The notes beneath the pieces are model-generated. The model ran no database searches and was not told the DNA's origin. It was given only the letters and a program-made list of their open reading frames with translations. Below, in pieces: positions 1 to 24,526 of a DNA stretch of 37,252 bases. Source of the stretch: Calcarisporiella thermophila CBS 279.70 (lineage: Eukaryota > Fungi > Calcarisporiellomycota); assembly GCF_041956535.1 (NCBI RefSeq), contig NW_027192196.1, positions 104,566-141,817 on the forward strand, in the 5' to 3' direction. Made by a program: the position numbers and the translations under genes. Numbering within the stretch: the first letter of the stretch is position 1; each line of letters starts with the position of its first letter.

Positions 1-134
1 TATTTATATAAGGAGGAATAAACTCGATGACAATCAAAGTATCATAATAATATCAATGGAGCGAATTTTTATAGCTTTCTTATTCCAAGGTGATATTGAG
101 CGACTGCTTTTTCTCCATCTGATATTCAATTTTG

Positions 135-1139
135 CTAGAGATCAAGGCACGTTAAAGTGGTGTTTTCTCGAAGTGCTTGAGCGAAAGCTTGTTTTCCTTC
201 ATCTGATATGTTATTCCCATACAAATAAATATTTGTCAGAGTCTTGTTCTCACGAAGAGCCTGAGCTATATCATTCCCTCCTTCATCTGATATCTCATTA
301 TAATCTAGTTCAAGCTGCGTCAAAGCTGTGTTCTTTCGTAATGCTTTACCAATTGCTTTTCCTCCTCCGTCTGATATCTCATTAAATTTCAGATCAAGAT
401 GCACCAAAGCCGTGTTCTCTTGTAATGCTTGAACAATTGCTTTTCCTCCTATATCCGATATACTATTATAACTTAGATCAAGCTGCGTCAATGTGGTATT
501 CTCTCGTAGCGCTTGAGCAAATGCTTCTCCTCCTTCGTCTGATATCTTGTTCCCTCCAAAATTAAATTGCCTCAAAACTTTGTTTTCTCGAAGTGCTTGG
601 GCGATTGACACCCCTCCTTCACACGTTATCTTATTACTTCTCAGAGTAAGATGTGCCAAAGTCTTGTTCTCACGGAGTGCTCGTGCGATTGCTTTTCCTC
701 CTACGTCTGATATCTCATTGCTACTCAGATCAAGTTGCGTCAAAGTCGTGTTCTCTCGTAGTGCTTGAGCAATTGCTTTTCCTCCTTCGTCTGATATTTT
801 GTTAATACTCAGATTAAGATGTGTCAAAGTCTTGTTCTCTAGGAGTGCTTGAGCGATTGCTTTCCCACCTTCTGCTAATATAGAATTATTGCCAAGATCA
901 AGCTGCGTTAATGTATTGATCTCTCGAAGTGCATGTGCAATTAACTCTCCTGACTGTTCAGAACGTCTTGCTTTGCATTTTGCTGGTTTCAATTGCTTCA
1001 TCTTATCCATTAATCCCGCGAAAGTTACTTCACCGATGTCTGATATAATATTCTCTCCCGCTATTTCAGCACAATATCTTTCTTTAGTATTATCAATCTC
1101 TGGCCGCTCATCGGGATTTATCTGGTGTATATCTATCAT
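135..1139 (-). CDS. RI-like/NLRC3-like LRR protein (array copy 1), kinase-less and probably truncated at both ends
   Basis: 334-aa ORF with about 9.5 28-aa repeats (LRENxTLTxLDLxxNxISDEGGKAIAQA). The N-terminal NPDERPEIDN matches the end of the kinase in copy 2. The LRR pattern continues past the stop (LDL*QN*ISDGEKAVAQ), and a homologous N-terminal stretch lies upstream of an in-frame TAA (KVVEEGFQTFNQGPKNKSAIKR*FSGEE). Confidence 0.85.
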   Translation of the reverse strand: MIDIHQINPDERPEIDNTKERYCAEIAGENIISDIGEVTFAGLMDKMKQLKPAKCKARRSEQSGELIAHALREINTLTQLDLGNNSILAEGGKAIAQALLENKTLTHLNLSINKISDEGGKAIAQALRENTTLTQLDLSSNEISDVGGKAIARALRENKTLAHLTLRSNKITCEGGVSIAQALRENKVLRQFNFGGNKISDEGGEAFAQALRENTTLTQLDLSYNSISDIGGKAIVQALQENTALVHLDLKFNEISDGGGKAIGKALRKNTALTQLELDYNEISDEGGNDIAQALRENKTLTNIYLYGNNISDEGKQAFAQALRENTTLTCLDL

Positions 1140-1718
1140 TTCTTCACCACTAAATTATCTTTTTATTGCACTCTTGTTCTTAGGTCCTTGGTTGAAAGTT
1201 TGAAAGCCTTCCTCGACTACTTTTTAATATTGTTTAAGCTGAAAAGGCGATGCAGAGACGCTAGTGTTTAAATGCAACAACTCTTATAGCTTTTAACCTC
1301 CATACTAAATTTACAGAGCCCCAAAAATTTAATACAAAAAAGGAAACCAGCTCTTCCGTTCGTTAATAGTTACAAAATAGATGCTATTCTGAGTCATATA
1401 CTTTTAATCTTTTATCGAGTTAAAATGGTGTAATTTGGAGTAAAGATGACTTTATTCTATGACTCGAATTTATATGTTTTGAAATTAACTATCACATAAT
1501 GCTTTTCAAAGCGAAATATAATTCAAGCCACAATATAATAAAAAAAATTCAAGATATAGGCAAGAGCAATTGTAAAAACTGAAAGGGCAACTTATAATAT
1601 AATAATGCATATTTTCTACTTTCCCTTTTGTTCATATTTCCTAGCAGAAGCATTAGAAAAAAAAACAATTAATAAAAATAATAAATAATAAAAGATTAAT
1701 CATGTTATGCTAAATCCA

Positions 1719-4084
1719 TCATATTACAAAGATTTTCGATAGCATCTTCTTCATTCTACAAGGGCGAACGATTGTAAATCCTTCTTCAGGCGATATCATC
1801 CTCAGTCTCCGATCAAAATTTATCGAAATCGATTTCTCTAGACGCAATTGTACTAATAATTTTAGTCCTTCATCGGATATTCTATTTCCACTCAGAAAAA
1901 GCTGCTTCAAACTTTTGTTCTCTCGAAGTGCTCGAGTAATTGCTTTTCCTCCATCATCGGATAAGTTATCCCCACTCAGATCAAGCTGCGCCAAAGTCGT
2001 GTTCATACGAAGTGTTTGAGCAATTGTTTTTCCTCCTTCATCTGATATGAAATTGTAACCAAGATCAAGACGTGTCAAAGTCGCGTTCTCTCGAAGTGCT
2101 AGAGCAATTGCTCTTACTCCTGCACATGATATGCTATTATATCTCAGATTAAGCTCTGTCAAAGTTGTATTCTCCCCAAGTGCTTGAGCAAATGCTACTC
2201 CTAATTCAAAAGATATGCTATAATAACTAAGATCAAGCTGCGTCACGTCTTATTCTCACTAAAAGCTTGAGTAGTTGCTTCCCCTCCTTCAGTTGATATG
2301 CTATTCCGACTCAGATTAAGCTGCGCCAAAGTCGTGTTCTCTCTGAGTGCCTGAGCAATTACTTTTCCTCCTTCATCTGATATGCCATTGTAACATAAAT
2401 CAAATTGCGTCAAACTCTTGTTCTCTCGAAGTGCTTGAGCTATTGCTTTCCCTCTTTCAGCTGATATATCATTATCTTTCAGATTAAGATGTGACAAAGT
2501 AGAATTCTCTCGAAGTGCTTGAACAATTGCCACTCCTCCTTCGTCTGATATTCTATTCCCATTAAGATATAGGTGCGTCAAAATTTTATTCTCTCGAAGC
2601 GCTTGAGCGATTGCTTTTCCTCCTTCAGGTAATATGTTATTATATCTAAGATCAAGCATCATCAAAATCGTGATCTCTTTAAGCGCTTGCATAATTAACT
2701 CTCCAGATGATTCACGAAGACTTGCATATAATTTTGCATGTTTCAACTCTTTCGATTTAGCCAAAAGTCCAGCGTAGGTTACTACACCAATGTTTGTTAT
2801 CACATCACTCTCTTTTGTTTCAGCAAAATATCATTCTATAACATTATCAATCTCCGGTCGCTCGTCGGGATTTTGCTTCCAGCATGCTTCAATCATGGTA
2901 TGATATTTTTTGAACTGAACCTGAATGCTTTCTTGCATTCCATCTATTACTTTATATCTTACTGCATCGTCTGACTCGGTCTCAGAGGGTAATCTTCGAT
3001 GGAGAATCTCCCACACAATCACTCCATATGAGAACACATCCGATTTAGCAGTGTACTGATTGAAATCATTTAATACTTCAGGTGCTCTCCATCGAACCGC
3101 ACCATTTGGTACAGATCCCTTGCTCAAAGTCAAGAGAATACTGCTCTAACTCCCTTTGACTAGTCCAAAATCAGCTATCTTGGGATGCATGGTACCATCT
3201 AGCAATATGTTATTGCTTTTGAGATCACGATGCACGACCCCGAGTTGATGGATAAAGGAGAGCCCATATGCCACTTCTTGTATGATCATCTCTTTAACTT
3301 GATCATCGAGGTGGTTATCAGAGTCACTCAAGTAATCCATGAGATTCCCATTTTCGGCCAACTCCATCACTACCATACACTTTTCCTCGTACACTGAATA
3401 TCCGTAGTACGACACGATATTATTGCATCCTTGCAATTTTTTTAATGCATAAATTTCTTTTCTGAACATCTTATCTAGGGAATTTGACAGTCTATTCATG
3501 ATCTTAACTGCCACAGTTATATTGTTCCAGCAACCCTTATATACTTTTCCAAACGAGCCACTATCCCAGTATTCCAACAACTGTACAGAATCATAACTTA
3601 ACTAATGTCCCTCCTCGCTACCGCACATAATCTCTGATTTGATCTGCTCAATACAACTAGCTGCAAGCTCGACAATGGAGTCAGGGGCTTCAAAATTTGA
3701 CACCTCTTCTTTCGGGTCGGTAGGAAAATTTTTTGTCGAGATTGAGACAAATGCAGAGACAGAGGTCATGGATAATTCCATCCAACCTTAGTAAAACGAT
3801 ATTAACTTTAAAGGTGTAGTTAGTGAGCATTATCCTTACGATACCTCTCTTGCTAAACGCATTTACAATCTTTTCGGCATCTCGTAAGGTCTCGCCTAAT
3901 TTTACTAAAATATGGTCATACTTTTGCTGAGCTCTCTGATCCATATTTTGGACAATATACTCCAACTATTGCAACGAGATACTATCTCTTCGCATCGTGC
4001 TTTATTGAACTTAATTTCATCTCTCTTATTGCTAATCTGATTAATCAAACTAAGTATCTGACCAGCAATTCCTGCAACTTCCAT
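1719..4084 (-). pseudogene. Disrupted MLKL-like N-terminal 4-helix bundle + TKL-type protein kinase + RI-like LRR fusion (array copy 2)
   Basis: ATG at 4084 gives MEVAGIAGQILSLINQISNKRDEIKFNKARCEEIVSRC; a frameshift leads to LEYIVQN...LVKLGETLRDAEKIVNAFSKRGIVRIML. Then: frameshift near 3730, TAG 3602-3604, kinase motifs SGSFGKVYKG, VAVK, HRDLKSNNILL, DFG, in-frame TAG 3146-3148, VRWRAPE, KSDVFSYG, CWKQNPDERP, in-frame TGA 2831-2833, and about 10 LRRs with a frameshift near 2246. Confidence 0.85.
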
Positions 4085-4420
4085 CTGCTTCAGCCTTTAT
4101 AAGAATGTATGAGATACAATAGAAAAGAAGCCGTATATGAGATGATTAGCACCTAGATAAGAGTGATTAACAAGTTAGACATTTAATAAAAGTTAGCCGC
4201 CCCCAATAACCATGTAAATCTGTCCTTATATTCATATAATTCTTTCTGGGTTTACCTTTTCAAGATGTGTTCTTCAAATTAAAAATTCGGTAAGAACAAT
4301 AGTGTTGTGTCTGATCTTTGAAAGTGAATATTTTAGAATCCAACAACCTCCAACTAGGGAGTGAGGCTGTACTGTGCCTCCACGGTCGTATACTCACTAA
4401 CTTAATTATTATGAATTCTA

Positions 4421-4910
4421 TTACTGATAAAGTTTAGGGAAAGTCCAATTGCTTGTAACTCGATAATAATGATTGAAATTTATGACATTAATTTGCATAG
4501 AGTTTAAATAAAATATTCGACAAACTCTTGTTTTCTTGAAGTATTTAGGTGTTTTTCTTTCTGATATGCTATTCCATTTGATATCTAGGCGGTGTAAAGT
4601 CATGTTCTTTCCAAGCACTCGAGCAATTGCATCGCTCCCTCCACCCAATACGATGTTAAACCCTAGATCAAGCTGCGTCAAAGTCGAATTCTCTCGAAAT
4701 GCTTGAGCAATTTCATCTTTCCCCTCATCTGATTTACTATTATTACTCAATTTAATTTACGTCAAATTTGTATTATCTCGAAGCGCTTGTGCAATTAACT
4801 TTCCTCTTTCGGTTGATACGCTGCCTAATCTAGCTCAGATCAAGCTTCAATAAAGTTGTATTCTCTTGAAATGCTTGTACAATTAACTCTCCTGACAATT
4901 AACCAAGGCT
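4421..4910 (-). pseudogene. Heavily decayed RI-like LRR fragment (array copy 3)
   Basis: SGELIVQAFQENTTLLKLDLS near 4895-4835, homologous to QSGELIAHALREINTLTQLDL of copy 1. Also IAQAFRENSTLTQLDLGFN and IARVLGKNMTLHRLDIKWNSIS. Several stops and frameshifts; boundaries approximate. Confidence 0.75.
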
Positions 4911-5043
4911 TACTTTAATAATTGATGGATTCAAGCTTGGAGTTTCATCGACATGCTCCCATATTCGCTAAACTTTCTTACAAAGGATTTCTCTTTTTCA
5001 TATGTTATATTGATAGCTCGCAGTTCAAGTTAAGCAGCTCTTC

Positions 5044-6664
5044 CTAGTTTTGCTCTATTATCCTGTGCTGACTAAGAGTAAGCCTTGTTAACGTTTTATT
5101 CTCGCGAAGTAATTGAATCATTGCTTTTTCTTCTTCGTCTGATATCATATTATAACTTAGATCTAACAGCTGCAGACTCTTATTCTCCCGAAGAGCTTGA
5201 GCTATCTCTTTCCCTCCTGCATTTAAAATACCATTCAGAAGCAATTCGAGCTGTACCAAGGTCTTATTTTCTTGGAGCGCTTGCGCTATTGCTTTTCCAC
5301 GTGCATCAAATATATTGTTTGCGTTTAAACTTAGATGAGTTAAAGTCTTGTTCACTCGTAGTGCTAGAGCTATTGCAACTCCTCCTTCAGCTGATATGCT
5401 ATTAGAGCCAAGATTTAGATACTTCAAAGTCATATTCTCTCGAAGCCCCTGAGCGATTGCTTTCCCTTCTTCAACTGATATTCCGTTTCGATTCAAATCA
5501 AGACGCGTTAAGCATTTGTTCAATCTAAGCCCCTTGCCAATTGCTTTTCCTCCCTCGACTGATATTCTGTTCCGACTCAGATTAAGCTGCATCAGACTTT
5601 GATTCTCTCTAAGCCCTTGGCCTATTGCTCTTGCACCTGCGTCGGATATCTTATTCTGTCTCAAATCAAGATGCGTTAACTTTTGATTCTCTCGAAGTGC
5701 TTGACCTATTTCATTTCCTCCTTCATCAGATATGGAATTTTTTCGCAGATCAAGCTGCATTAGAGACTTGTTAATACGAAGTGCTTGACCAATGGCTTTT
5801 CCTCCTTCATCTGTAATCTCATTAAAACCCAGATCAAGCTTAGTCAAAGACTTGTTCTCCCTAAGTCATTGAGCGATTACTTTTCCACCCTCACCCTTCA
5901 GCCTATTACAACTGATATCAAGATGTGTCAAAGCCATATTTTCTCGAAGTGCTTGTCCAAATGCTTTTCCTCCTCCATCCGATATTCCATTACCCTCCAA
6001 AATTAACAGCTTCAAGGTCTCATTCTCTCGAAGTGCTTCGGCGAGCTCTTTTCCACCTTCATCAGATATTTTATTCCGTCCTAGATCAAGATATGTCAAT
6101 GTTTGATTCTTTCGGAGAGCCTGACCTATAGCTTTTCCCCCTTCAGCTGATATATTGTTTCCATATATGATGAGATGTACCAGACTCTTATTCACTCGAA
6201 GGGCTTGACTAATTGCATATCCTCCTTCAGGTGAAATTCCATTATTACTTAGATCCAGGTGTGTTAAAGTATTGTTCCCTTGAATTCCCTGAACTATTTC
6301 CTTTACTCCTTCGTCTAAAATTCCATTGCAGCTCAGATTTAAATGCGTTAATACATTGTTGTCACGAAGCACCTTTCCGATTGCCATTCCTCCTTTAGCT
6401 GATATTTTTTTTTTCGCGCAAATCAAGTTGTCTCAAGCTCTTATTATCTCGAATTACTTGAGCGATAAGTTCTTCAGACAATTCACTAAGTCTAGCTTTA
6501 AATTTTTCGGAATTCTGTATTTTCAGCTCTTCTGATAATTCACTGCTCGGAGCTACATTATGATCTAAAATCAGAGAATCATTTGCTTCACCTCTGAATG
6601 GTGCTTTTATGCTGCTCTCGGTCTCTGGCTCTTCGATGAATACCTGAAATCCTCTTTCTATCAT
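5044..6664 (-). pseudogene. RI-like LRR gene (array copy 4, about 17 repeats, about 540 aa) with one homopolymer frameshift and one in-frame stop
   Basis: ORFs 6395..6664, 5866..6426 and 5044..5847 join via an extra base in the T10 run (6405-6414) and an in-frame TGA at 5866-5868 (AQ*LRENK, where sibling repeats have AQGLREN or AQALREN). Confidence 0.85.
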
Positions 6665-6997
6665 TTTTTTTTCTATAACTTATAGTAATGTAAAAGGAGA
6701 TATAAGAGATGTGAAGGCAGGAGTTTTTAATGCAGGTTATACTACAACTAAAAAACTACCATACTCATTCAAACGCACGAGTCCAAATACTTAATATACA
6801 AAAAAGGCAATAGATGGCTTGGTGATATCCATTTATTGCAAGTTACAAATAACTGTACTATTCTGAGTCATACACATTCTTTTATCAAGTCAAGTCTGGG
6901 ATTTGCTATAAATTGGAAAGTAGATGAATATATTTTATAACGCAAATTTATACACCTGTAAACTAAAAAAAATCGGCTCAAGTTCTTAGAAAGGCTA

Positions 6998-7483
6998 ATG
7001 GATAATATTAGTATTTGTGATCTGTTTGAACCTAGAGAAAATAGTGCAGCATGGTCCGATGAATTTGCCAGTGCAGTATCAAGAGAAATAATGCACTGTG
7101 AGAGAGAGAAGCTCTTCTCAATCGGATATCATCGGACTCGCCTACATTACCTACCGAGTGATATTGTAGCTCAAGAAGTTGATGAGACATACTCAAACAG
7201 AATAGGATGCATTGGAGAGTTGCAGGGCTGGCATCGGTGGCTTGATAATTACACGAATACTTATGTTGTATTATCTTGGGTAATGGAAAGTGGCCGTATT
7301 GGCATTTACGCTTGTGGTACTGTAGAAGGTTTGCAACATGTACTGATTCAAAACTCAGGTCATGGATGGCTAAGATGGCTGGTTGGCGTAGCGTTGGCAA
7401 GGAGACCTGCATGTTCACCTCAGGATTGGGACCGGTCTCTCTCATTTTGCTCTGATGTTTCTAAAGACACTTTGATTGGTTGA
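6998..7483 (+). CDS. Hypothetical protein (161 aa), possibly the 5' part of a decayed longer gene
   Basis: ATG-initiated ORF with protein-like, Trp/Gly-rich composition and no recognised domain; divergent from LRR copy 4. Confidence 0.4.
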   Translation: MDNISICDLFEPRENSAAWSDEFASAVSREIMHCEREKLFSIGYHRTRLHYLPSDIVAQEVDETYSNRIGCIGELQGWHRWLDNYTNTYVVLSWVMESGRIGIYACGTVEGLQHVLIQNSGHGWLRWLVGVALARRPACSPQDWDRSLSFCSDVSKDTLIG

Positions 7484-13919: not shown

Positions 13920-15336
13920 CTAGTGCCCATTGGCGGTCGCCGGTTCCTCTTTCAGTAGCCATCGGCCTTGTCCATAGTCGAGGGGTCGATCGCCAGTAGA
14001 AAGCTTCTCCACCAATTTTTTGAACGGCTCATCCTCGGGTACATTCTTGAAATACTTTGGCTCCCAGATTTCGCCCGTCTCCGCACGCTTCCGTCTGGCC
14101 GCCCGCTGCTCTTCTTCGATCAACGTCTTCTCACGAGTTGCCAAAGAATAATTCTTATTCCGTAGAGCCTCTGACACCTTATGCCATAGGCGGTGCGATT
14201 CCATGGGGCCCTGCTCTTCCAACGGCTTCAATTGCATTTGAGAAGGGCCCGGTTTGGCCGCATCCAAAAATAGCTTCTTTTCGTTGGTCGCCAGGTCCAC
14301 TACCTCGGATACACTGGCCCATGTGCCTTCGATTTCGTGCGTCGGCTTCCCGGCTGGGTTGGATACCGTGCATTTGAAGCTGTGGTTTGTGCCAGAGAAC
14401 AGGTTGCGGGTGCTATAAGAGAAGCGAGCAGTCCAGCCAGTAGAGGAAACAATCCAGTTGGTATCGCACACTTCGGTATAAGGACTGCCCGTGAGCAAAT
14501 TCTTGATAAAAAGATGGGGTAGAGTCACCAGGTATTGCTCGGAGTTGCGTTTCTTCAGCGTAATCACCACATGTCCTGCTTGGTCGACGTAGACATAGGG
14601 AGCACGGAATCTTGTCTAAGCCGTCATAGGATAGGCAGAGAGTCTAGTCAGTACGAATGGCTCAAGGTATTGGACCGAATGCAGCATCGGTGCTAGGTGA
14701 TTTACCTTTTGGCCGGAATGGCCTACAAGTTCCACTCCCGCCTTCTCGTTTATTCCCCAGAAAGCCGATACGGGGGGATGATGTGAAACCTGCTCTGCCA
14801 TCAACCTCGTTTCGCCCAGATCGCCAACGGCTGGCCATGTTGCAAAAAATTGCTCTCCAAGAGGCGGATTGAATGGCTTTTTCTCGCTTTCTCCTCGGGT
14901 AGCTGCTCTACCTTCGGTTGTGTAGCTCCCGCGCAGAGTAGAGATGAACCATCGGGCCGCTGCAAGCATACGCTCAGATTCTGAATCGGATTCGGTGATG
15001 GCAGCAAAAAGCTCGGGATGATCTACCCAAAAAGCACTAGGAAGAAAAGCGTAAGATTCGAATATAATAGAATCCGAGGCAAAAATTCACGGATGTGCAG
15101 AAACAATCGATGATGAAAGGGGTGAAACCAACTTACGAGTATTCTAGCAGCGACATCCCACTCAGCAGAAACGATGGGCAAGTCATACTGGCGAGATCTC
15201 CGCTGAAAGAGGCAATGGTGCTGAGAAACGACATGAATTCGCTACTCAACTGCTGGCCATTGGATTTTCCGTTCTCGCTTCCTCGTCCATTAGATCCATT
15301 TTTCGAACTGTTGCCTCCGAATAGTCCCGAAAACAT
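13920..15336 (-). CDS. KES1: Oxysterol-binding protein, Kes1/Osh4-like short ORP, multi-exon
   Basis: FSGDLASMTCPSFLLS..SLLEYS, EKKPFNPPLGEQF, OSBP signature EQVSHHPP, EKTLIEEEQR..WEPKYF. Confidence 0.88.
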
Positions 15337-15532
15337 CCTCCGAACAAGTGATGAAAGAAAGAGAATCGATTAAAACAAAGAAGCAATCAACGAAAAAAAA
15401 AAATGATGAATAAGCCTAATAGACAACACAGAAGGGCTTAAAAAAAATGTTGTGTGATATATTGTGTGACTGCGTGACACAACCGGGCATAAAAAAGCAA
15501 ATCCGAATCTCTCTGATCTTCCAGTCCTAAAT

Positions 15533-15605
15533 CGAGCGTACCAGGGGTCGAACCTGGAATCTCCTGATTCGTAGTCAGGCGCCTTGTCCATTTGGCCATA
15601 CACCC
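15533..15605 (-). tRNA. tRNA-Arg (anticodon ACG), identical to the copy at 8097-8169
   Basis: Exact reverse complement of the 73-nt tRNA at 8097. Confidence 0.97.
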
Positions 15606-15670
15606 TATTCAGTTCAAGCCACACGCTTTGTTCCGGAATGACTAGTGTTTATAAACGAAGTTTTGGATTC

Positions 15671-15671
<1 letters not shown>

Positions 15672-15702
<31 letters not shown>
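15672..15702. repeat. Poly-T tract (T31; A31 on the minus strand)
   Basis: Uninterrupted run of 31 T. Confidence 0.95.
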
Positions 15703-15703
<1 letters not shown>

Positions 15704-18215
15704 TTCGGAAAGCTGTTCAGATCGGGACCAATTCGCACTGGCTTGGACTGATGAAGGTGTTGGTCCCTCCTCAAACTTTAAAGAAACCAACAAGTCGCTG
15801 GAGTCCTGGTCTACAAAGAATATCCGGGGCATAATGGACTAGTGGTCTAATAAAATCCATACGATGCTTTTCCAATATGCGATTCGACTCTGATGCCGAA
15901 AGGTGGCGCCTTGCTCTACTAATGACTCCTGTATCCATCTGTCTGCTTATCAACCGTGGGCATTTTTCGTTGTCGAGTTCAATTGGGAAATCTAAGCCTA
16001 CTCTCATCGCGTCATTAAGTGATAACATTGGTTCACGAACTCGACTCATCCTTGAGTTTATTCAAATTGATAGATGCAAACTAAGTTAGTTCGACGGATT
16101 AAATATAAAATTTCAACGAGGAACACACCATCTAATTCTCTAGCTAGTCTGTCCCCTCCCAGGAGGCCCGAGGTGTCATATACTGTTGGAGGTTGCTAAA
16201 ACAACTTGCCTGGGTCATGTAAGCATATTAAGCCAGAATATGCTTTGAGTGACTTATGTCATTCGGGATATCAAAGCAAACCCGGCACGGTACCCGGCTG
16301 GTTTGCTCAACTGGTTGCCCGCTAAATGCAAGCATCTTCGGCATTATGAAGACGCTCTACCCAGATACTCGTTGCTCAGCCCATCACTGCTATTCATTTC
16401 GCCCCCTTGTTATCATGTACAGTGTCAGCACATAACCTTTGTGCCATTCTCCAATGTTTGCACAGAGCTTCCTGAACTTTCTATGCTCTGCTTCGACTCT
16501 CCAACGGGTTGTCGGAGTTACTAGGCCGTAGTTAATAAAAAGAACTTCTAGATAACATCATCAGCCGTTTTAACCCTAACTTTAATTCCCACCTGTGTAA
16601 TATTTGCTTCTGTCGCCTTATAGAATATGGACCCTCGGTCAATTGGACTGCGTGTTTGGTGACCTTGCTAGCTCTCCATTTGAATTTCTTTTCTTTCAAT
16701 TGACTCTTTCCAGAGTGCAAAGATGCAAATTGTTCAACATCGTCGCCTTGACTGCCAAGAGGAATCTCGTCCGAGTATTGACGCCCAAACGGGACAAGCG
16801 GATTCCCATGGGAGAGCCCTGGTGCAACTGAAGCTGAAGCTCGAGCTGGAATCATCCGCCGTTGCCGCAAAATCTTGGATGCTAAAGGTTAAGCACTCTG
16901 ACCGTACCCGTGGAATGGGGGTGCAGCAAGCTATTTGTACCCAGTATAAGCTTTTTCGCTCGGAGTATCTATGGTGCCCCTGTGGCTTCATTTGTAACTC
17001 AGGATAGCCTGACCATGGGTTTAGGGAGAGAGGCTGACCCCTGAATTCCCCATGCGTAGCTCTGCTGTCAAGGCCAAGTTGGGCCATCCCCCAGACTTGC
17101 TCGGTCTCGCCTTACTCTGGGCCGGAGTCTAACCATGCAGTCGCGCAAAGCCGTTGAGAGGCTCCGAAGGGGTGGTGTGCATCGCGTGCGCGCCAGACTC
17201 TTCTCCCGGCGCTTGGCTGCAAACCCCTTCTCTGCCGGTGACAATTAAGCTCTGGCCCGTTGAGGGTTTTAGACTTTCAGCTCACAAGAAGGATGGATGG
17301 GATCTCTTGTTCATTTAGAATTCAATACCGCGTCATCCCCCTGCCCTATTCCGAAAATACCTTGGGTTTCCCGGGCTGCTTTGATTAGCCGAAGGCGAGA
17401 CTGGCTTCAGCCGAGGGGGTTGGGTGCGTCTGCAAGATGCAGCTCGATGTATAAAAATGAAGCGATTGTGCTAAATCAACCCGGTTGCATGCGGCTGTAG
17501 CAGGGCCGCCTTTCCAAGCCTTGCTGGCTGGGGGAGGGGGGCAGCGCGGCCTCGACTCGAACCCGCTCGAATTGATTCTAGGCCCTTGGTCGAGATCGAG
17601 CGGCCCGCGAACGAGGGCGGGTTGACGCGTGAGCAATGATGAAAGCGACACTGACTCGCAAAGGCTTCAAATCCTGTGAAAATTATATTTGTGCATGTGC
17701 GACTCAAATGCACGGTGCCCCCGGGAAAGATTTCGCGTAACCCGCTTGCAAAAAGTCTATTTTTTTTTTTGGCTGTGTGGTGTTTCTCCTGCTAACAGAG
17801 CTAGCCGCTGCTCTTTAGATCAACGAACTATTGCCTAAGGTAGGTTGCGCCCGCGGCGCTTGCCCTCTGCCGCCCAGAGGGGCGGTCCCTTCTTTTTCCG
17901 CTCTGTTTTTCAGGGCGAATGGGCCGGGCCTGGGATTCAGAAACATAAATAATAAAAACCTCGAATAGCCAAGATTACGAGATTGTGTATTTATTTTCTG
18001 TGTCGCTCACTTTTTTATTTTTTGTCTTTTATTCTTCGTCATTCCTTCCATTGCGCGCGTCCGATTCGATTCCCTTGGTTGTTAATTCTTTGCCTTTTTA
18101 TTCCTCGCTCTTCTATTAGATCGTCCAAATACTGTGCGTGTACTACCTCATCTTGTTTCAGACTTGCTATTTTTTGCGGTTTTCTCATTTTGCCCCATCG
18201 ATTCATAGGGTCGAG

Positions 18216-18981
18216 ATGTCGAAAGCACAATTCCTGCGCGAATACAAGCTGGTGGTTGTGGGTGGAGGAGGTACCGATTCATCCCGATTTCTGATGATGT
18301 GGATGCTTATTCCCAATCTCATCTCTAGGTGTCGGCAAATCTGCACTGACGATTCAGTTCATCCAGAGCCATTTCGTCGACGAATACGATCCCACCATCG
18401 AGGACTCCTACCGCAAGCAGTGCGTCATTGATGATGAGGTCGCCCTGCTTGATGTGCTCGATACAGCGGGCCAAGAGGAATATAGCGCCATGCGTGAACA
18501 GTACATGCGCACCGGGGAGGGCTTTTTGTTGGTATATGCCATCACGAGCCGCTCAAGTTTCGAGGAGATCAGCATGTTCCATCAGCAAATACTGAGAGTG
18601 AAGGACAAGGACTATTTCCCGATGGTGGTGGTGGGAAACAAGAGCGACTTGGTACACGAGAGGCAGGTTTCCACGCAAGGTATGGCTTCCCCCCTCTCTC
18701 CCCATATCAACGGGTTCCCGTTTTGTCCATTCGATCCAATGGACTCACTGGTCTCTTTCTGCTTGTTTATAGAGGGCAAGGAGCTTGCTCGACGATTCCA
18801 GTGCCCCTTCCTTGAGTCGTCGGCAAAAGACCGCATCAACGTAGAGGAGGCATTTTATGACCTTGTGCGCGAAATCAGGAGGTACAATAAGGAGATGTCG
18901 CCGGGTGCTCGGCAGAACGGATACTCCTCTGAGCAGGCCCAGACAGAAAAAGAGGGCGGATGTTGCTGCGTCGTGATGTGA
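18216..18981 (+). CDS. RAS1: Ras small GTPase (Ras1-type), 3 coding exons
   Basis: [18 protein letters not shown]|[49 protein letters not shown]-terminal CCCVVM (CaaX plus palmitoylation Cys); introns at about 18271-18328 and 18680-18772. Confidence 0.96.
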
Positions 18982-19542
18982 GGTCGCGTGTTTCATTCTG
19001 ATGAGCATCTTTCTTTTTATCCTTATTTGTTTGTTTTCTATTCCGTTTCGATGACCGAGTTTCTCTCTTCTATTTTTTTTTTCCCTTCGTTTATTTCTTA
19101 TTTCTTTTTCCATCTATATCTATCTTTTTCAATACTCTAATTATAATCGTTGTCTTTATCCATATCTAAATAAATAATATTTGTATTTGACCGCACCTTG
19201 GAAACCTCGCCTCTCCTCTTGGAGCTTGGTCACTGCTCTGCTGCGCCACATTTCCCAAAGTGACTATGCTTGATGGACACGCCCGTAATGGACATCTAAT
19301 TTTTCCCTCTCCTGTGTATAAGTAACCCCCCTTTGGACTCTGCCCCACTAATTTATCATCTCCATCCTGATGAACTCACTATTTTGATCCGTTCACTTGA
19401 TCACGCCTGCTGAGAATTGTCACTTTAGCACCTCTATAGCTTCCGAAATTTAGAATCTATAATAGCTTTCCCCAAAATCAAAGGGCTTTGATCCCATTGA
19501 TCCCCATCGATTTCTAAAATCATCCTTGGATCTCACCCCACT

Positions 19543-20277
19543 ATGGCTGCTGAGGTAATCGAGATTTTGAGCGATAGTGAACCGGAGGATATTGTAGCTA
19601 GCACAAGTGCATCTCAATCGCAATCAGTAGACGATGATGTCATTATCACTCGTGTCGTCGAGAACCACTCTCCATCCCATACCTTGACCGGCCCCTTCGA
19701 GATCCTAGATTCTGTCCTACGTACCGCCAATAATCCCCCCCCTCCACCCGCTGCATCTCCGGCCCCGTCCACCCGCTCGCGCCGAGGCCGCCCTACCCGC
19801 CGCGCCGCCCCCCGACGGACACCGGGGGGTCGGGGTCCTTCACAAAACTCGCGGCGGCGCACTTGGATGAATGCGCAACGCATGCAGGCCGCCATGTCAG
19901 GCCTTCTTCAGCCGCGATATTATCAGTTCCAGACGGTGCTGATGGAAGGATTGCCTCCAACCTGGCTAGATTCTTCCCCGGACTGGTTTTGGGAGGACGA
20001 GGATTCCGAGAGTGGGCGCCGCGCTGCTGGCCCTTACCCTACATCAGCGCCGATGAAGCCGGCGCGGGTGGCGAAGCCGGGGTTCACCCGGTCCCTGGCC
20101 CAACCGGTAGCGTGCCCGCTGTGCTTGAACGAGCTGTCCGAGAAGGAGATGCATGCGGTGCGGAGGTGTGGGCATGTGGTGTGCGGCACATGCGTCGAGA
20201 GCCTCACCAGGGGGGGGCGGAAGTGCGCTTGTGGCAAGCGGGTATATCCCCGGGACGTCATCCGGTTATTTGTTTGA
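19543..20277 (+). CDS. SIM-containing C-terminal RING-finger protein (SUMO-targeted ubiquitin ligase-like; RNF4/Slx5/Slx8/Rfp-type architecture)
   Basis: SIM-like motifs EVIEILSDSE and DDDVIITRV; C-terminal CPLC...CGHVVCGTC...CAC...IRLF. Confidence 0.75.
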   Translation: MAAEVIEILSDSEPEDIVASTSASQSQSVDDDVIITRVVENHSPSHTLTGPFEILDSVLRTANNPPPPPAASPAPSTRSRRGRPTRRAAPRRTPGGRGPSQNSRRRTWMNAQRMQAAMSGLLQPRYYQFQTVLMEGLPPTWLDSSPDWFWEDEDSESGRRAAGPYPTSAPMKPARVAKPGFTRSLAQPVACPLCLNELSEKEMHAVRRCGHVVCGTCVESLTRGGRKCACGKRVYPRDVIRLFV

Positions 20278-20618
20278 TCACTTCTCCATCTCGTTTTCTT
20301 GTTTGCACTGCATGTAATATTCTTGTTCATCCTCCTATTTAATAAATTCTTCTCATCATCTAATCGTGCCCAATCAGCGCCGGTCTTGGGATTGAAAATC
20401 AGATTGAAAATCTTGCCGGCCTATGAGCGGTGAGATCCCTCGTCTTTTTAAACCTAACCCTCAAACTTGACCTCTCTCTCCGCTACCGCTTTTTTGCTGG
20501 CTCTTGGCTTCCTGTCTTCCCTAACCTTCTCCTCTTCCCCCGCTCGCCCTTCGCCCTCTTCCTCCGCCAGTTCGATCCATCCTCTGTTGCTCCCGCTCTC
20601 CCAATCATAATCGCCATT

Positions 20619-20990
20619 ATGCGGATACATGCCTACTCGCTTTTCTTGGTCCTCCCTGCCTGGATCTCTGCCCAGGGTATAGAGTCGCTCGACAAAAAAT
20701 CCATTGTTTGCGTGCTCTCCGGCTCGCACGACGAGTCCTGCCCAGTCTCGTCTGAACCTGGCCTCTGCAAGAGTCTCGGCCAGAGCTGCCAATTCCCCAT
20801 TTCGTCCCTCACCGTGGTCCCTAATGATGCCGAGGTGCGCCTCTACTCCGATGACAATTGCTACGACATCATCAAGAGTTTCAATGGGGATGTGAATGAG
20901 GTGGGCGGATTGACCGCCAAGAGCATCAAATTGTTTGGCAAGATGCAGAACGAGGAGGCTCCCGAACCCTCAACCGCTCCCGCTAGCTGA
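20619..20990 (+). CDS. Small secreted Cys-containing protein (123 aa), beta/gamma-crystallin-like motif
   Basis: Signal-peptide-like MRIHAYSLFLVLPAWISA; ISSLTV..VRLYSDDNC..AKSIKL pattern. Confidence 0.65.
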   Translation: MRIHAYSLFLVLPAWISAQGIESLDKKSIVCVLSGSHDESCPVSSEPGLCKSLGQSCQFPISSLTVVPNDAEVRLYSDDNCYDIIKSFNGDVNEVGGLTAKSIKLFGKMQNEEAPEPSTAPAS

Positions 20991-21416
20991 ATGGCCTGCG
21001 ATGCTCAACCGCCTACCCCTACTCCCTGACCCTTTATCTGATATGCTATATTATAGTTGCTATATCGCACTTCTAATGTCGCTTTGATTTATTTTTACTT
21101 CTTGATCCCTCCTGGCTTCCCAGGAAGCAACTGTAAATAGAGTAGGCTTCTCTCTCTCTCTTTCTACTTTTCCATTTTAATGATATGGTTACTTTTTTAT
21201 CTCCTTCGCTTTCTAATAATAATAATATATAAAAGACAAATAATCATGTATTAAAGTAAGAATGCGGGCGGGAAATGGAAGGGGGGGGGGGGGGAGGGAA
21301 TAGAATAATTATCGTTGGGTGCTATGCCAAGGCTAACCGAATAAATGGAGTGGGAAAAAGAATCATAGTGGAAATAAACCAACTGAATATAGCACGAGAC
21401 TCGGGAAGAGGAGAGG

Positions 21417-23403
21417 CTATACCCCCTGCACCACCCGGGGCCATGTCTGTCGTATCTTCTCGAAGAGCTCGGGTTTTGTTCGCGCTAGTGCGCCGGGGTC
21501 CTCGGCCAGGGCCACGAAGGTAGTGGCGTTACCTGATAGGATCACACTTCCAAAGATGTACCTAGAATAAAGGAAAGAAGGGGGGTTAGAAGAGCACATC
21601 AAGCCGTCCGCCGATAGAGTTTAGCCCTCCGCAACGCTTACATCATCTGCAGGCCAAGCAGGAAACTGACGAACACAATGATGACGGTGTAGGGGCCATT
21701 GGCCGCCCCACCATTGAATGCGGGCTTGGCAATCACCAGATAGATGTAGCCCAGCACCCCTGTGATGATGCCCACCAGGAAGGCACCCATCCCCACCACG
21801 TTTCCAACCAGGTTGTCGTTGATGATCTGCTCAATGCCGCGGTCTTTGATGATGGTCCAGGTGTCCTTGGCGGCCCGCAGGAACGGCTTTCCATAGATGG
21901 CACATTGAGTATACGCGTAGAAGTTGATGTATTCAAGGATCCCCTCGATACAAGCCAGCAGGCAGTCAATGCAGATGAGGCAGAAAGCGGCAAACGCGTT
22001 ATTGGAATCGTACGCGGCAGAGCGCGTGAGCGTGCGCAGGGTCTGGATAATCGCAATAAGAAGCCCCCCGAAGCAGACACTTCCAAAGCTGGTGGTGAGC
22101 GCTCGTTTCAGCGATCCAATGGTGGGGTTGGACGGGGCCGTGGGGGTTCCGTACAAGAAGTAGTAGGAGGCAAATGCGCCACTGACGGTAACGTGAATCA
22201 CACCTTCAATCACTGTGGATGGAGCAGAGGATTCCGCGGGTGAGCGTCAACAAAGTTCGATGCTATAGCGCGACACCCTTACCTTGTGTTACCCAATAGA
22301 AGCTAAAAACGGAGTAGATCATTGCCACCACAAGACGCCCATCACTGGTCGTCTGCTGAGTGCCGTTGGGCTGCGTGGTAGTGGTGGAGAGCCATTGGTA
22401 GAGCCCAATGACCGTCAAAATCCACCACACGTTGTAGGCAATGGCTACCACCAGGCCGGCGATGGCAATGATGACGGTGCCGTAGTATCTAAAGGAAAAG
22501 GAGAGGCGGATTAGAGGATCAAGGGTTGGCCAGTCACATATGCACGGTGACAGTTACTTGCGCATGATGGAGGTGACGGTCTCCAGCATGACCACGGCGA
22601 AAGGAATGCGGCTTTTCCACCAGAACCACATCATGATAAAGAGCACCGAGAATATCAAAAAGATAATCGCGCCTACAAAATATCTACCAAGGGACATTCA
22701 AAAAGCATTAGCCATCGGCTCTTCTTGGAAAGGAATTGGCCCATGATCGATTACCCCATAACAAAGAAAAATATCGTGACGCCAATGTACACGAGAATGG
22801 ACAGAAGAAAAGTGAATTTGATGAAGAAACGCGGGAATCTGTAGTATTGCAAAAGTAAATGCAGAATGAGCTCACATCGTCAGGGTTCAACTGGTGCCAC
22901 TCTGCCCAGACTCATTACCTTTGGGCGAGCAGAACATAGAAAAAGCTTATCACGAATCCAATCACGGCAAGGATAAACAGCACCACAATTAAGCCGGTGT
23001 CCAGATTAATACTAGAAGACGTGCCCGAGCCCGAGGGGCGGCCAGAAAATATACCCTTATCCACGGCTGCACTCAAGCCAAAGTAGCTCAGTACCACAAA
23101 CCCAAGCAGGTGCACGATAAAGAGGATCGCAAAGAAAACATCATTGCATTTAGGCTGTGGATTGAATTTTTCAGAGTCTTGCGGTCGCGGGGGAGGGGGT
23201 TGGTAAGACTGTTGCGGAGATGCATAGCCGTCCGGACCAGATTGGTACGTAGGAGGGGGCGGCATGTAGTATGGTTGGGATTGGGGCGGTGGCGGATTGG
23301 GCGGTGGTGCGTACTGTTGCTGTGGAGGAGGCGGCGGGTAATAAGGCTGTTGCTGGCCACCTTGATAGCCCTGGCCTTGCGGAGGCGGATAGCCGTAGGA
23401 CAT
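21417..23403 (-). CDS. PNS1: PNS1 / choline transporter-like (CTL/SLC44) membrane protein, multi-exon
   Basis: P/Q/Y-rich N-terminus, CNDVFFAILF, RIPFA, HVTVSGAFASYYF, RALTTSFGSVCFG, INFYAYTQCAIYGKPFLRAAKDTW, IINDNL, TTFVALAEDP. Confidence 0.9.
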
Positions 23404-24526
23404 TGCGATTTAGAGTAGGTTTTGTGGTGATGGAGAGAAAAGAAACGAGGAGATTTTAATAGAACGGGAGCGAAAAAAGGCCGATTAACAAAAAGAGATT
23501 TGACGGAGGCACTTTAATGAAAAGACCTTACGCCACCACACTCAAGAATTTTCGATTGAAAAAAAATTGCCCTAAACAAAGCTCCAGGATTGGAGGAAAT
23601 TAAAAGATATTCTTGGCAGCCGATTTCTACCCGGCTTAATAGGGAAGAGAATTTGCCAATACGCTATTGAATGAAGGTAGTCAGTCTTCTCTATTGTATG
23701 GGGACGGCTGGTGTTGATTCATATTTTTACTACTGTTTTGTTTGCTTACATAACAAGTCTAGGGGGCGAGGTCCGGTAGGCGTAAATGGGCAGAAAGAGC
23801 AGAATTTTGGATACTATTTTGTCATACCGCCGATATAGTATGATTCTTTGAACACGCCCTGAAACCTTTTTTTTTTCTCGAAGTGTTAAGTTGAATTGGT
23901 AGAGATCGAATTTACGATCGCTGTTGGAGTGACAACTTCTAGGATAAAAGATGAACCAAAGATATTCTACCGTACACTGAAGAGAGTTTCATTTATCCAG
24001 AATAAAAAAAAGCCAAATATCTTAATTTGACTAGCTACAATCATGCTTATTTCTATAACGGATCTCCACAATTTATATGCATTTTTGCGTACTCGTTCAT
24101 CAGCGTAATAGCCTATTAACACAAATAAGTTTACATTAAGTTAACAGGTGATTGAATAATAGCGAGAGGACGATTGACGAGTCTGGTAATGCAATTACGA
24201 GCGTACTACCATTAGTTAGAAAATCCATAGTAAATAATTTATACTCTTCATCGCAAAGAACAGTTCATCGATGACTTGGAAATGAATTGGCAACCCCCAG
24301 TCGATGCCTCATGGGTTTCTTCATTGGAAAATGGGGAGCCCCTGTTATCGATGGCAGAACAACCCGAATAATACGTATTATAAACTATGGACTATTTCAA
24401 AACACCATCTTTCCAACCTTTTTTCTTTCACTCTTTTCCACAAATCTCCTATTGATATAGATATATGTATTTTTTATTAGATTTTGCTTTCAACCTTATT
24501 ACATATATTGCACTCTTCTCTAGTCA

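Follow-up and report, generated by a model that had tools for sequence, protein, structure and literature searches.

Remains of a gene joining an MLKL-like bundle, a TKL kinase and leucine-rich repeats in the fungus Calcarisporiella thermophila

Calcarisporiella thermophila is an early-diverging fungus that has a phylum of its own in the NCBI taxonomy. A stretch of 37,252 nucleotides of its genome, positions 104566-141817 of contig 6 and here called the window, holds the remains of one former gene on the minus strand at 1719-4084. This gene is called copy D below. From N- to C-terminus it encoded a probable MLKL_N-type helical bundle, brace helices, a kinase of the TKL class, a linker and leucine-rich repeats (LRRs) of the ribonuclease inhibitor (RI) type. 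The reading preferred here is that copy D was inactivated recently, and that its intact product would have been an autoinhibited switch in cell death or immunity. This reading draws on analogy with known proteins and is given a probability of roughly 0.6.

The gene measures 2366 nucleotides, or about 788 codons. Searches used its single pieces, a paralogue with an intact N-terminus (copy A) or an outside relative (P0002) as queries. A preliminary description of this DNA had joined several open reading frames (ORFs) and an unlisted 5' piece into a single gene, and this holds up. There are seven collinear pieces on the minus strand (3905-4084, 3690-3965, 3602-3781, 3146-3580, 2831-3133, 2243-2803 and 1719-2246), and the ATG at 4084 aligns to Met1 of copy A and also to Met1 of P0002. 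The features are collected in Table 1.

The same description had counted six lesions and called the gene a pseudogene. Six were indeed located by tblastn with copy A and P0002 against the window: three frameshifts and three in-frame stops. Two junctions, at 3146 and 2831, had been described as single stops in an otherwise continuous frame. Both are, but the count was one short, as a third single stop lies at 3602. The alignment of P0002 to 3748-2852 runs in a single frame and spans two of the stops. Judged by its sequence, copy D is a pseudogene, with lesions that would be disabling relative to its intact relatives, and the locus is predicted to make no three-domain protein today.

It could be objected that copy D is not broken at all, that what look like lesions stem from errors of assembly or from unusual introns, and that an intact three-domain protein is made. 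The lesion calls do come from the assembly sequence only, and one frameshift falls within an A6T4 homopolymer, a typical site for long-read errors. Of the six lesions it is the only one that could plausibly be a sequencing error. The other two frameshifts lie outside long homopolymers however, and the three stops are of the substitution type, in a frame that is continuous and well conserved. Neighbouring copies have decayed too. Introns at the frameshifts were considered and rejected: the junctions are too tight, because copy A is open, collinear and intron-free across these sites. An unbroken copy D is regarded as highly improbable.

Between copy D and copy A, dN/dS is 0.31 over 450 codons, with a dS of about 0.86, which is near saturation and makes this a rough figure. 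The ratio indicates that copy D, through most of its past, was a coding gene kept by purifying selection. Given just six lesions in 2.4 kb, its death appears to have been fairly recent. The two copies are only some 72% identical in DNA, a divergence too great for reading a mutation spectrum that might point to repeat-induced point mutation (RIP) as the cause of the stops.

Copy D certainly contains a kinase and ten RI-type LRRs of 28 residues each, with Pfam E-values far beyond chance. The kinase motifs named in the preliminary description are all in place: VAVK at 3503-3514, HRDLKSNN at 3209-3232, DFG at 3164-3172 and APE at 3077-3085. In the Gly-loop, Asp replaces the first Gly. Membership of the TKL class is indicated by the profile match together with the beta-3 Lys, the alpha-C Glu, HRDLKxxN, DFG and APE. 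The best solved relatives of the P0002 kinase, which is 46% identical to that of copy D, are EGFR first and then others that include CTR1, B-RAF and RAF1. Since copy D and P0002 have all catalytic motifs, the pseudokinase feature of MLKL-like architecture is absent from both. The kinase of copy D is predicted to be catalytically complete, of the TKL class and seemingly active.

The ten repeats were counted by hand from the translation, and the LRR_6 profile (PF13516) matches nine stretches of them, with E-values of 9e-25 and 7e-21 for the two halves. This agrees with the earlier count of about ten NLRC3-like LRRs after the kinase; tandem LRR_6 repeats of 28-29 residues are what the RI/NLRC3 type consists of. 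The gene had also been said to have no nucleotide-binding oligomerisation domain (NOD). Pfam finds neither NACHT nor NB-ARC in any piece of copy D or in copy A, and the defining feature of STAND proteins and NOD-like receptors (NLRs) is therefore missing.

The N-terminus had been described as MLKL-like, and several independent lines, each of them modest, now make it very probable that the bundle is homologous to the MLKL-type domain. Sequence identity between the bundles of this family and of animal MLKL is about 12-15%. The N-terminus of copy A scores 30.1 bits against Pfam MLKL_N (cut-off 27, E 4e-7; 29.8 bits in the genome scan), with RPW8 a weak second at E 0.01. In a profile scan of the whole genome, copy A is the sole MLKL_N locus over the cut-off. 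The two N-terminal pieces of copy D match the same profile (PF22215) collinearly, at E-values of 0.015 and 0.08 that are both under the cut-off, so for copy D itself the profile supports the call indirectly, by way of copy A. When a profile of the family was compared with the 177,635 sequences of the PDB, the top six were all MLKL, aligned from around residue 8 in both (E about 0.04). Language-model neighbours fall without exception in clusters of MLKL_N, MCAfunc, DUF7792 and RPW8, at a score of 0.93.

Structure prediction, which had been proposed as a check by means of AlphaFold and Foldseek, gave a divided answer. It came out in favour for P0002. The AlphaFold2 (AF2) model of its residues 1-130 has a predicted local distance difference test score (pLDDT) of 83.5 and a predicted template modelling score (pTM) of 0.78, and was confident in one of five models. 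With this model all five of the best Foldseek matches are to the executioner domain of human MLKL (probability 0.98-1.0, E 0.06-0.2). VIA gives Z-scores of 11.9 for mouse MLKL, 11.6 for human MLKL and 11.1 for the CC-R domain of NRG1.1, at a root-mean-square deviation of 2.2 A, and 110-127 residues are aligned in the case of MLKL. The ESM-Atlas returns plant MLKL_N/MCAfunc clusters, some of them fused to kinases, as well as RPW8, at TM-scores of 0.73-0.78 and 1.7-2.2 A. The P0002 model is thus an up-down four-helix bundle that superposes on MLKL, NRG1 and RPW8, with scores that for helical bundles are not formally significant. A search of the viral structure library BFVD with Foldseek gave no match. 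For copy A the answer was negative: the model of its 170-residue N-terminus, made from a five-row alignment, reached a pLDDT of 54, found generic bundles in Foldseek and was discarded.

The order of the parts also follows MLKL. In copy D, copy A and P0002 alike, the bundle takes up residues 1 to about 115, helices continue to about residue 170, and then the kinase starts.

P0002 deserves an introduction of its own. An exhaustive HMMER pass with the N-terminus of copy A over 1.84 billion representative proteins produced one true outside relative, at E 7e-13, and this is P0002. At a length of 702 amino acids, it combines a bundle of the same kind (40% identity) with a TKL kinase that is intact (46% identity to each of the kinase halves in the window), and ends in Sel1 repeats. 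Word-indexed protein searches with the N-terminus of copy A or of P0002 returned the query itself only. A kinase tree of 56 sequences, made from P0002's own matches plus three other kinases of this genome, groups copy D, copy A and P0002 as a clade with support 99/90. A search with P0002 as query also brought up a chytrid protein, P0007 (HK102_000538 of Quaeritorhiza haematococci), of 606 amino acids, with 29.6 bits for MLKL_N, a TKL kinase and C-terminal ankyrin (ANK) repeats. Its gene model is N-terminally truncated, and BLAST detects no similarity between its bundle and that of this family. The intact bundle-kinase relatives therefore have a Sel1 tail (P0002) or an ANK tail (P0007), not an LRR tail.

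A number of observations weigh against a three-domain switch that starts with an MLKL-type bundle. Copy A exceeds the MLKL_N cut-off by just 3 bits, and the E-values in the PDB (about 0.04) and in Foldseek (0.06-0.2) are weak. The VIA Z-scores of 11-12 stay below the value of about 13 under which the tool itself advises caution with helical bundles. Four of the five AF2 models of P0002 were not confident, and that of copy A was poor (pLDDT 54, generic bundles only). No intact bundle-kinase-LRR protein was found among the 1.84 billion representative proteins, searches of viral and of metagenome contigs gave no match, and none of the copies in this genome keeps the three domains whole. In addition the kinase has been lost repeatedly and LRR-only genes are many, so the LRRs may work without the head. 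An intact homologue with the three domains in one ORF had been set beforehand as the thing to look for, and with none found in the genome or among these proteins, the claim of an extant receptor fails for now.

The main competing explanation is that the family consists of ordinary cytoplasmic TKL signalling kinases with LRR scaffolding, comparable to ROCO/LRRK or RAF-like kinases. The bundle would then be regulatory or dimerising, and its likeness to MLKL a matter of shared fold only. The intact kinase motifs, unlike those of the MLKL pseudokinase, fit this. Four-helix bundles are common, Cbl and designed bundles come close behind in score, the Z-scores are in the caution range and the Foldseek E-values are not significant. 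In the neighbourhood of the gene no amyloid or RHIM partner and no NLR was seen adjoining it. Sequence methods however also pick MLKL_N, be it by the Pfam cut-off, by the top six in the PDB or by language-model neighbours in the MLKL_N/RPW8 clan. The bundle is at the extreme N-terminus, its first helix is hydrophobic, and brace and kinase come next, which is the order of MLKL and of wheat Pm13. Birth and death of copies in an array rich in transposable elements is moreover typical of immune genes. An ordinary signalling kinase is held to be a possible but rather unlikely description.

For the preferred reading, a cell-death or immune switch, the mechanism is drawn by analogy from MLKL, wheat Pm13 and the fungal HeLo/HELL proteins (PMC12881547, PMC10951266). 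The intact protein would be autoinhibited, with the LRRs keeping it shut until the binding of a ligand or a modified guardee. Activation of the kinase, by autophosphorylation or dimerisation, would then release the bundle via the brace. Once released, the bundle would oligomerise on a membrane and permeabilise it. The words 'receptor', 'LRR-sensed' and 'cell death' should be taken as analogies when used of this family, and a kinase standing in place of the NOD module would be an architectural analogy only.

The origin of the bundle-kinase head raises a separate question. P0002 comes from the Logan contig SRR23867098_1540, which is 27.9 kb long, compact and intronless, with 32-40% GC. Its genes encode uracil-DNA glycosylase (UDG), TFIIS, RNA polymerase subunits 2 and 1, the latter split, a D5 primase-helicase, a GH18 chitinase, DUF4326 and an SNF2 helicase. 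Such a set looks like the gene signature of Nucleocytoviricota, and the contig may be from a giant virus or from an endogenous copy of one. Its host is possibly chitin-walled.

Such a head could have been exchanged between a giant virus and Calcarisporiella, in either direction. The family would then be a relic of this exchange, and the viral copy would serve the virus, for host manipulation or as a decoy, and not the immunity of the fungus. This would be compatible with either functional reading. P0002 is after all the sole outside homologue in the whole protein set, its contig has both large RNA polymerase subunits, TFIIS, UDG and the two helicases, the kinase tree places it as sister of the fungal copies (99/90), and these copies are found in an island of low GC (36-39%) that is rich in transposable elements. 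Yet identities of 40-46% are no sign of recent transfer, a single viral sequence cannot give a direction, and sampling for the tree was confined to P0002's own matches. The fungal genome has no capsid gene of nucleocytoplasmic large DNA viruses (NCLDV), and one weak D5-like match is found elsewhere, on another contig. Apart from a GH18 that is 23% identical, none of the other genes of the viral contig has a relative in the 80 kb around the array. On this basis the idea that the array itself is an endogenous giant virus was rejected. That GH18 is upstream of copy A, and at this identity it provides no evidence of shared synteny. Furthermore, Sel1 kinases of the MLKL family are reported as cellular genes in Glomeromycotina (PMC8778642), and the virus may have captured a host gene. 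All in all, exchange between virus and fungus is thought distinctly unlikely.

The genome that was searched spans 28 Mb on 116 contigs. Only four of its loci have the N-terminal domain, and two have the closely related kinase, in addition to a kinase scrap of 28 residues. The family is small and specific to Calcarisporiella thermophila. Copy D belongs to a tandem array on contig 6 that shows birth and death of copies: among its sisters, copy A has lost the kinase core, copy B the entire kinase, and copies C and E the complete head.

An in-frame deletion has taken about 141 residues, from the catalytic loop to helix I, out of the kinase core of copy A. In the LRRs of copy A, the frame after a stretch of 454 bases (L007 4131-4584) differs by one from the frame before it. 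The public gene model of copy A is 399 amino acids long and misses the first 35 residues, which form helix 1, as well as most LRRs. The loss in copy B is a second and independent one, as there the bundle is joined directly to the last residues of the kinase.

Table 1. Parts and lesions of copy D, and related loci in the genome. Positions are those of the window unless a contig is given.
Feature	Position	Strand	Details
Bundle piece 1: start codon, helix 1, start of helix 2 (residues 1-39)	3968..4084	-	67% identity to copy A residues 1-39; MLKL_N profile positions 2-33, E 0.015
Bundle piece 2: helices 2-4	3735..3965	-	Includes conserved RDAEKIVNAF; 48% identity to copy A residues 41-135; MLKL_N profile positions 45-117, E 0.08
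Brace/linker helices, bundle to kinase	3605..3733	-	Aligned to copy A residues 122-163; helix H136-169 in a low-confidence model
Kinase N-lobe through DFG	3149..3601	-	Gly-loop, VAVK, alpha-C Glu, HRDLKSNN, DFG; Pkinase E 7.8e-34; 46% identity to P0002
Kinase C-lobe, APE to DERPEID end motif	2834..3145	-	PK_Tyr_Ser-Thr E 1.2e-16; 46% identity to P0002
Family-specific linker, kinase to LRRs	2669..2830	-	Counterpart in LRR copies at 921-1112 and 6446-6646
LRR repeats 1-5, RI/NLRC3 type	2247..2668	-	28 residues each; LRR_6 E 8.6e-25, 5 stretches
LRR repeats 6-10	1826..2246	-	LRR_6 E 7.1e-21, 4 stretches
C-terminal tail and stop codon (1719-1721)	1719..1825	-	Copy A stops about 30 codons sooner, at the aligned INF/VNF motif
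Lesion 1: frameshift, one base short	~3966..3967	-	Two bases against one codon in copy A
Lesion 2: frameshift	3725..3734	-	Within A6T4 homopolymer run
Lesion 3: in-frame TAG	3602..3604	-	
Lesion 4: in-frame TAG	3146..3148	-	Right after DFG
Lesion 5: in-frame TGA	2831..2833	-	
Lesion 6: frameshift, one base short	~2244..2247	-	Start of LRR repeat 6
Copy A (VTP21DRAFT_9732)	contig 6, 81759-85179	+	About 23 kb from copy D; 170-residue N-terminus and kinase N-lobe intact, then linker and long LRR domain
Copy B	contig 6, 99.4-99.9 kb (region 99.4-101.5 kb)		Many stops; whole kinase gone, bundle joined to the kinase's last residues and linker
Kinase catalytic-loop scrap	contig 6, 101391-101474		28 residues
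Unnamed N-terminal scrap	contig 10		60 residues
Copy C	135..1139	-	334-residue open frame: kinase end NPDERPEID, linker, about 10 LRRs; LRR_6 E 7e-51
Copy E	4421..6664	-	Linker and LRRs in several frames; no bundle or kinase
LRR-only RI-type array	contig 6, 141-166 kb		Open frames of 293-931 codons, including genes of 800-930 codons, among DIRS-like retroelement ORFs

DIRS-like ORFs are found at L056 3746-6005, where a reverse transcriptase is accompanied by a tyrosine-recombinase-like frame. Immediately upstream of copy A is a gene for a LysM and GH18 chitinase protein (L007:83-1802). GC content is 36-39% in the array part of the window (1-7000) and 47-52% in a block of housekeeping genes beside it (14000-24000), which encodes an RRM protein, an oxysterol-binding protein, a RING finger protein and a choline-transporter-like protein. 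Other low-GC stretches of the window are at 24-28 kb and 30-36 kb.

NOD proteins are present in the genome in another form. No NACHT domain was found anywhere in it, and there are at least 14 NB-ARC loci. The three of these that were examined are NB-ARC proteins with tetratricopeptide repeats (TPRs), 1079-1268 amino acids long (L065:976-4368, L066:1158-4394 and L067:2977-6780). In these three the NB-ARC is nearly at the N-terminus, and no N-terminal effector domain was seen. With NB-ARC accompanied by TPRs in the three examined and no NACHT found, RI-type LRRs in this fungus go with the bundle-kinase head or stand by themselves, and do not go with a NOD.

Several known systems resemble this family in part. 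Animal MLKL (PDB 4BTF, 2MSV and 6ZVO) is the best match by profile and by structure, and runs likewise from an N-terminal four-helix bundle through a brace to a TKL-like kinase fold. It is however a pseudokinase switched by RIPK3 and has no C-terminal repeats, whereas this family keeps the Lys, HRD, DFG and APE and adds LRRs. Plant MLKLs and wheat Pm13 share the head of MLKL_NTD, brace and kinase. Pm13 is a cloned gene that is needed for resistance, and its kinase, which also keeps all catalytic residues, is predicted to be active (PMC10951266). In this respect the copy D family resembles Pm13 more than animal MLKL. The plant proteins lack the LRR tail though, are from another kingdom, and show no sequence relation that is detectable beyond the Pfam profile.

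The fungal HeLo/HELL proteins, like HET-S and HELLP, have a membrane-targeting bundle of the MLKL superfamily, and fusions of HELL or MLKL_N bundles to kinases or pseudokinases have been noted in fungi (PMC12881547). These proteins are from Dikarya and are often driven by amyloid motifs or NLRs; copy D has an LRR tail, and neither an amyloid motif nor an adjacent NLR. A survey of early-diverging fungi reports homologues of the MLKL family (TCDB 1.A.105) 'exclusively in Glomeromycotina', with Sel1 repeats (PMC8778642). These, like P0002, have a bundle-kinase head followed by solenoid repeats, and in bundle and kinase alike the nearest relative of the copy D family is P0002. The tail is Sel1 and not LRR however, and the published assignment for Glomeromycotina is to the TCDB family, not to the bundle.

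With NLR and STAND receptors this family shares an N-terminal effector, a C-terminal solenoid 'sensor' with LRR_6 of the RI/NLRC3 class, and a tandem locus with fast turnover. Copy D has no NACHT or NB-ARC and is hence not a STAND protein, and the sampled NB-ARC proteins of its genome carry TPRs. ROCO/LRRK kinases also combine LRRs and a TKL kinase in a single cytoplasmic protein, but with the LRRs N-terminal of the kinase, so in reversed order. They have no bundle, and Roc and COR are missing here.

No literature was found on this gene family in Calcarisporiella, or on run SRR23867098. The novelty that the preliminary description had claimed was overstated, since bundle-kinase fusions are known from fungi (PMC12881547, PMC8778642) and wheat (PMC10951266). 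The MLKL-like bundle-kinase head is not new in fungi or plants. What is new is the LRR tail and the lineage.

A wider and rather doubtful idea is that early-diverging fungi and an associated giant virus share death switches that have no NOD. These would have a constant head, made of an MLKL-type bundle and an active TKL kinase, and a solenoid sensor that can be exchanged: LRRs in Calcarisporiella, Sel1 repeats in P0002 and Glomeromycotina, and ANK repeats in the chytrid. The array would then record a path from full receptor to a 'hollowed' kinase to LRRs only, and the viral copy might be a weapon or a decoy in an arms race.

To our knowledge, descriptions of innate immunity in fungi centre on NLRs and include no LRRs. 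The MLKL-type executioners known from fungi are mainly those of Dikarya, which are driven by amyloid or NLR partners. The copy D locus is dead, its family is tiny, and what is said here of function is all by analogy. If the preferred reading is true, this family would provide a self-contained sensor, switch and effector that does without a NOD, with a logic nearer to that of wheat Pm13 than to that of HET-S. LRR, Sel1 and ANK tails on one head would amount to three natural 'sensor swaps', useful for studying how MLKL-like bundles are restrained. The giant-virus homologue, finally, hints at movement of such modules between fungi and their large DNA viruses.

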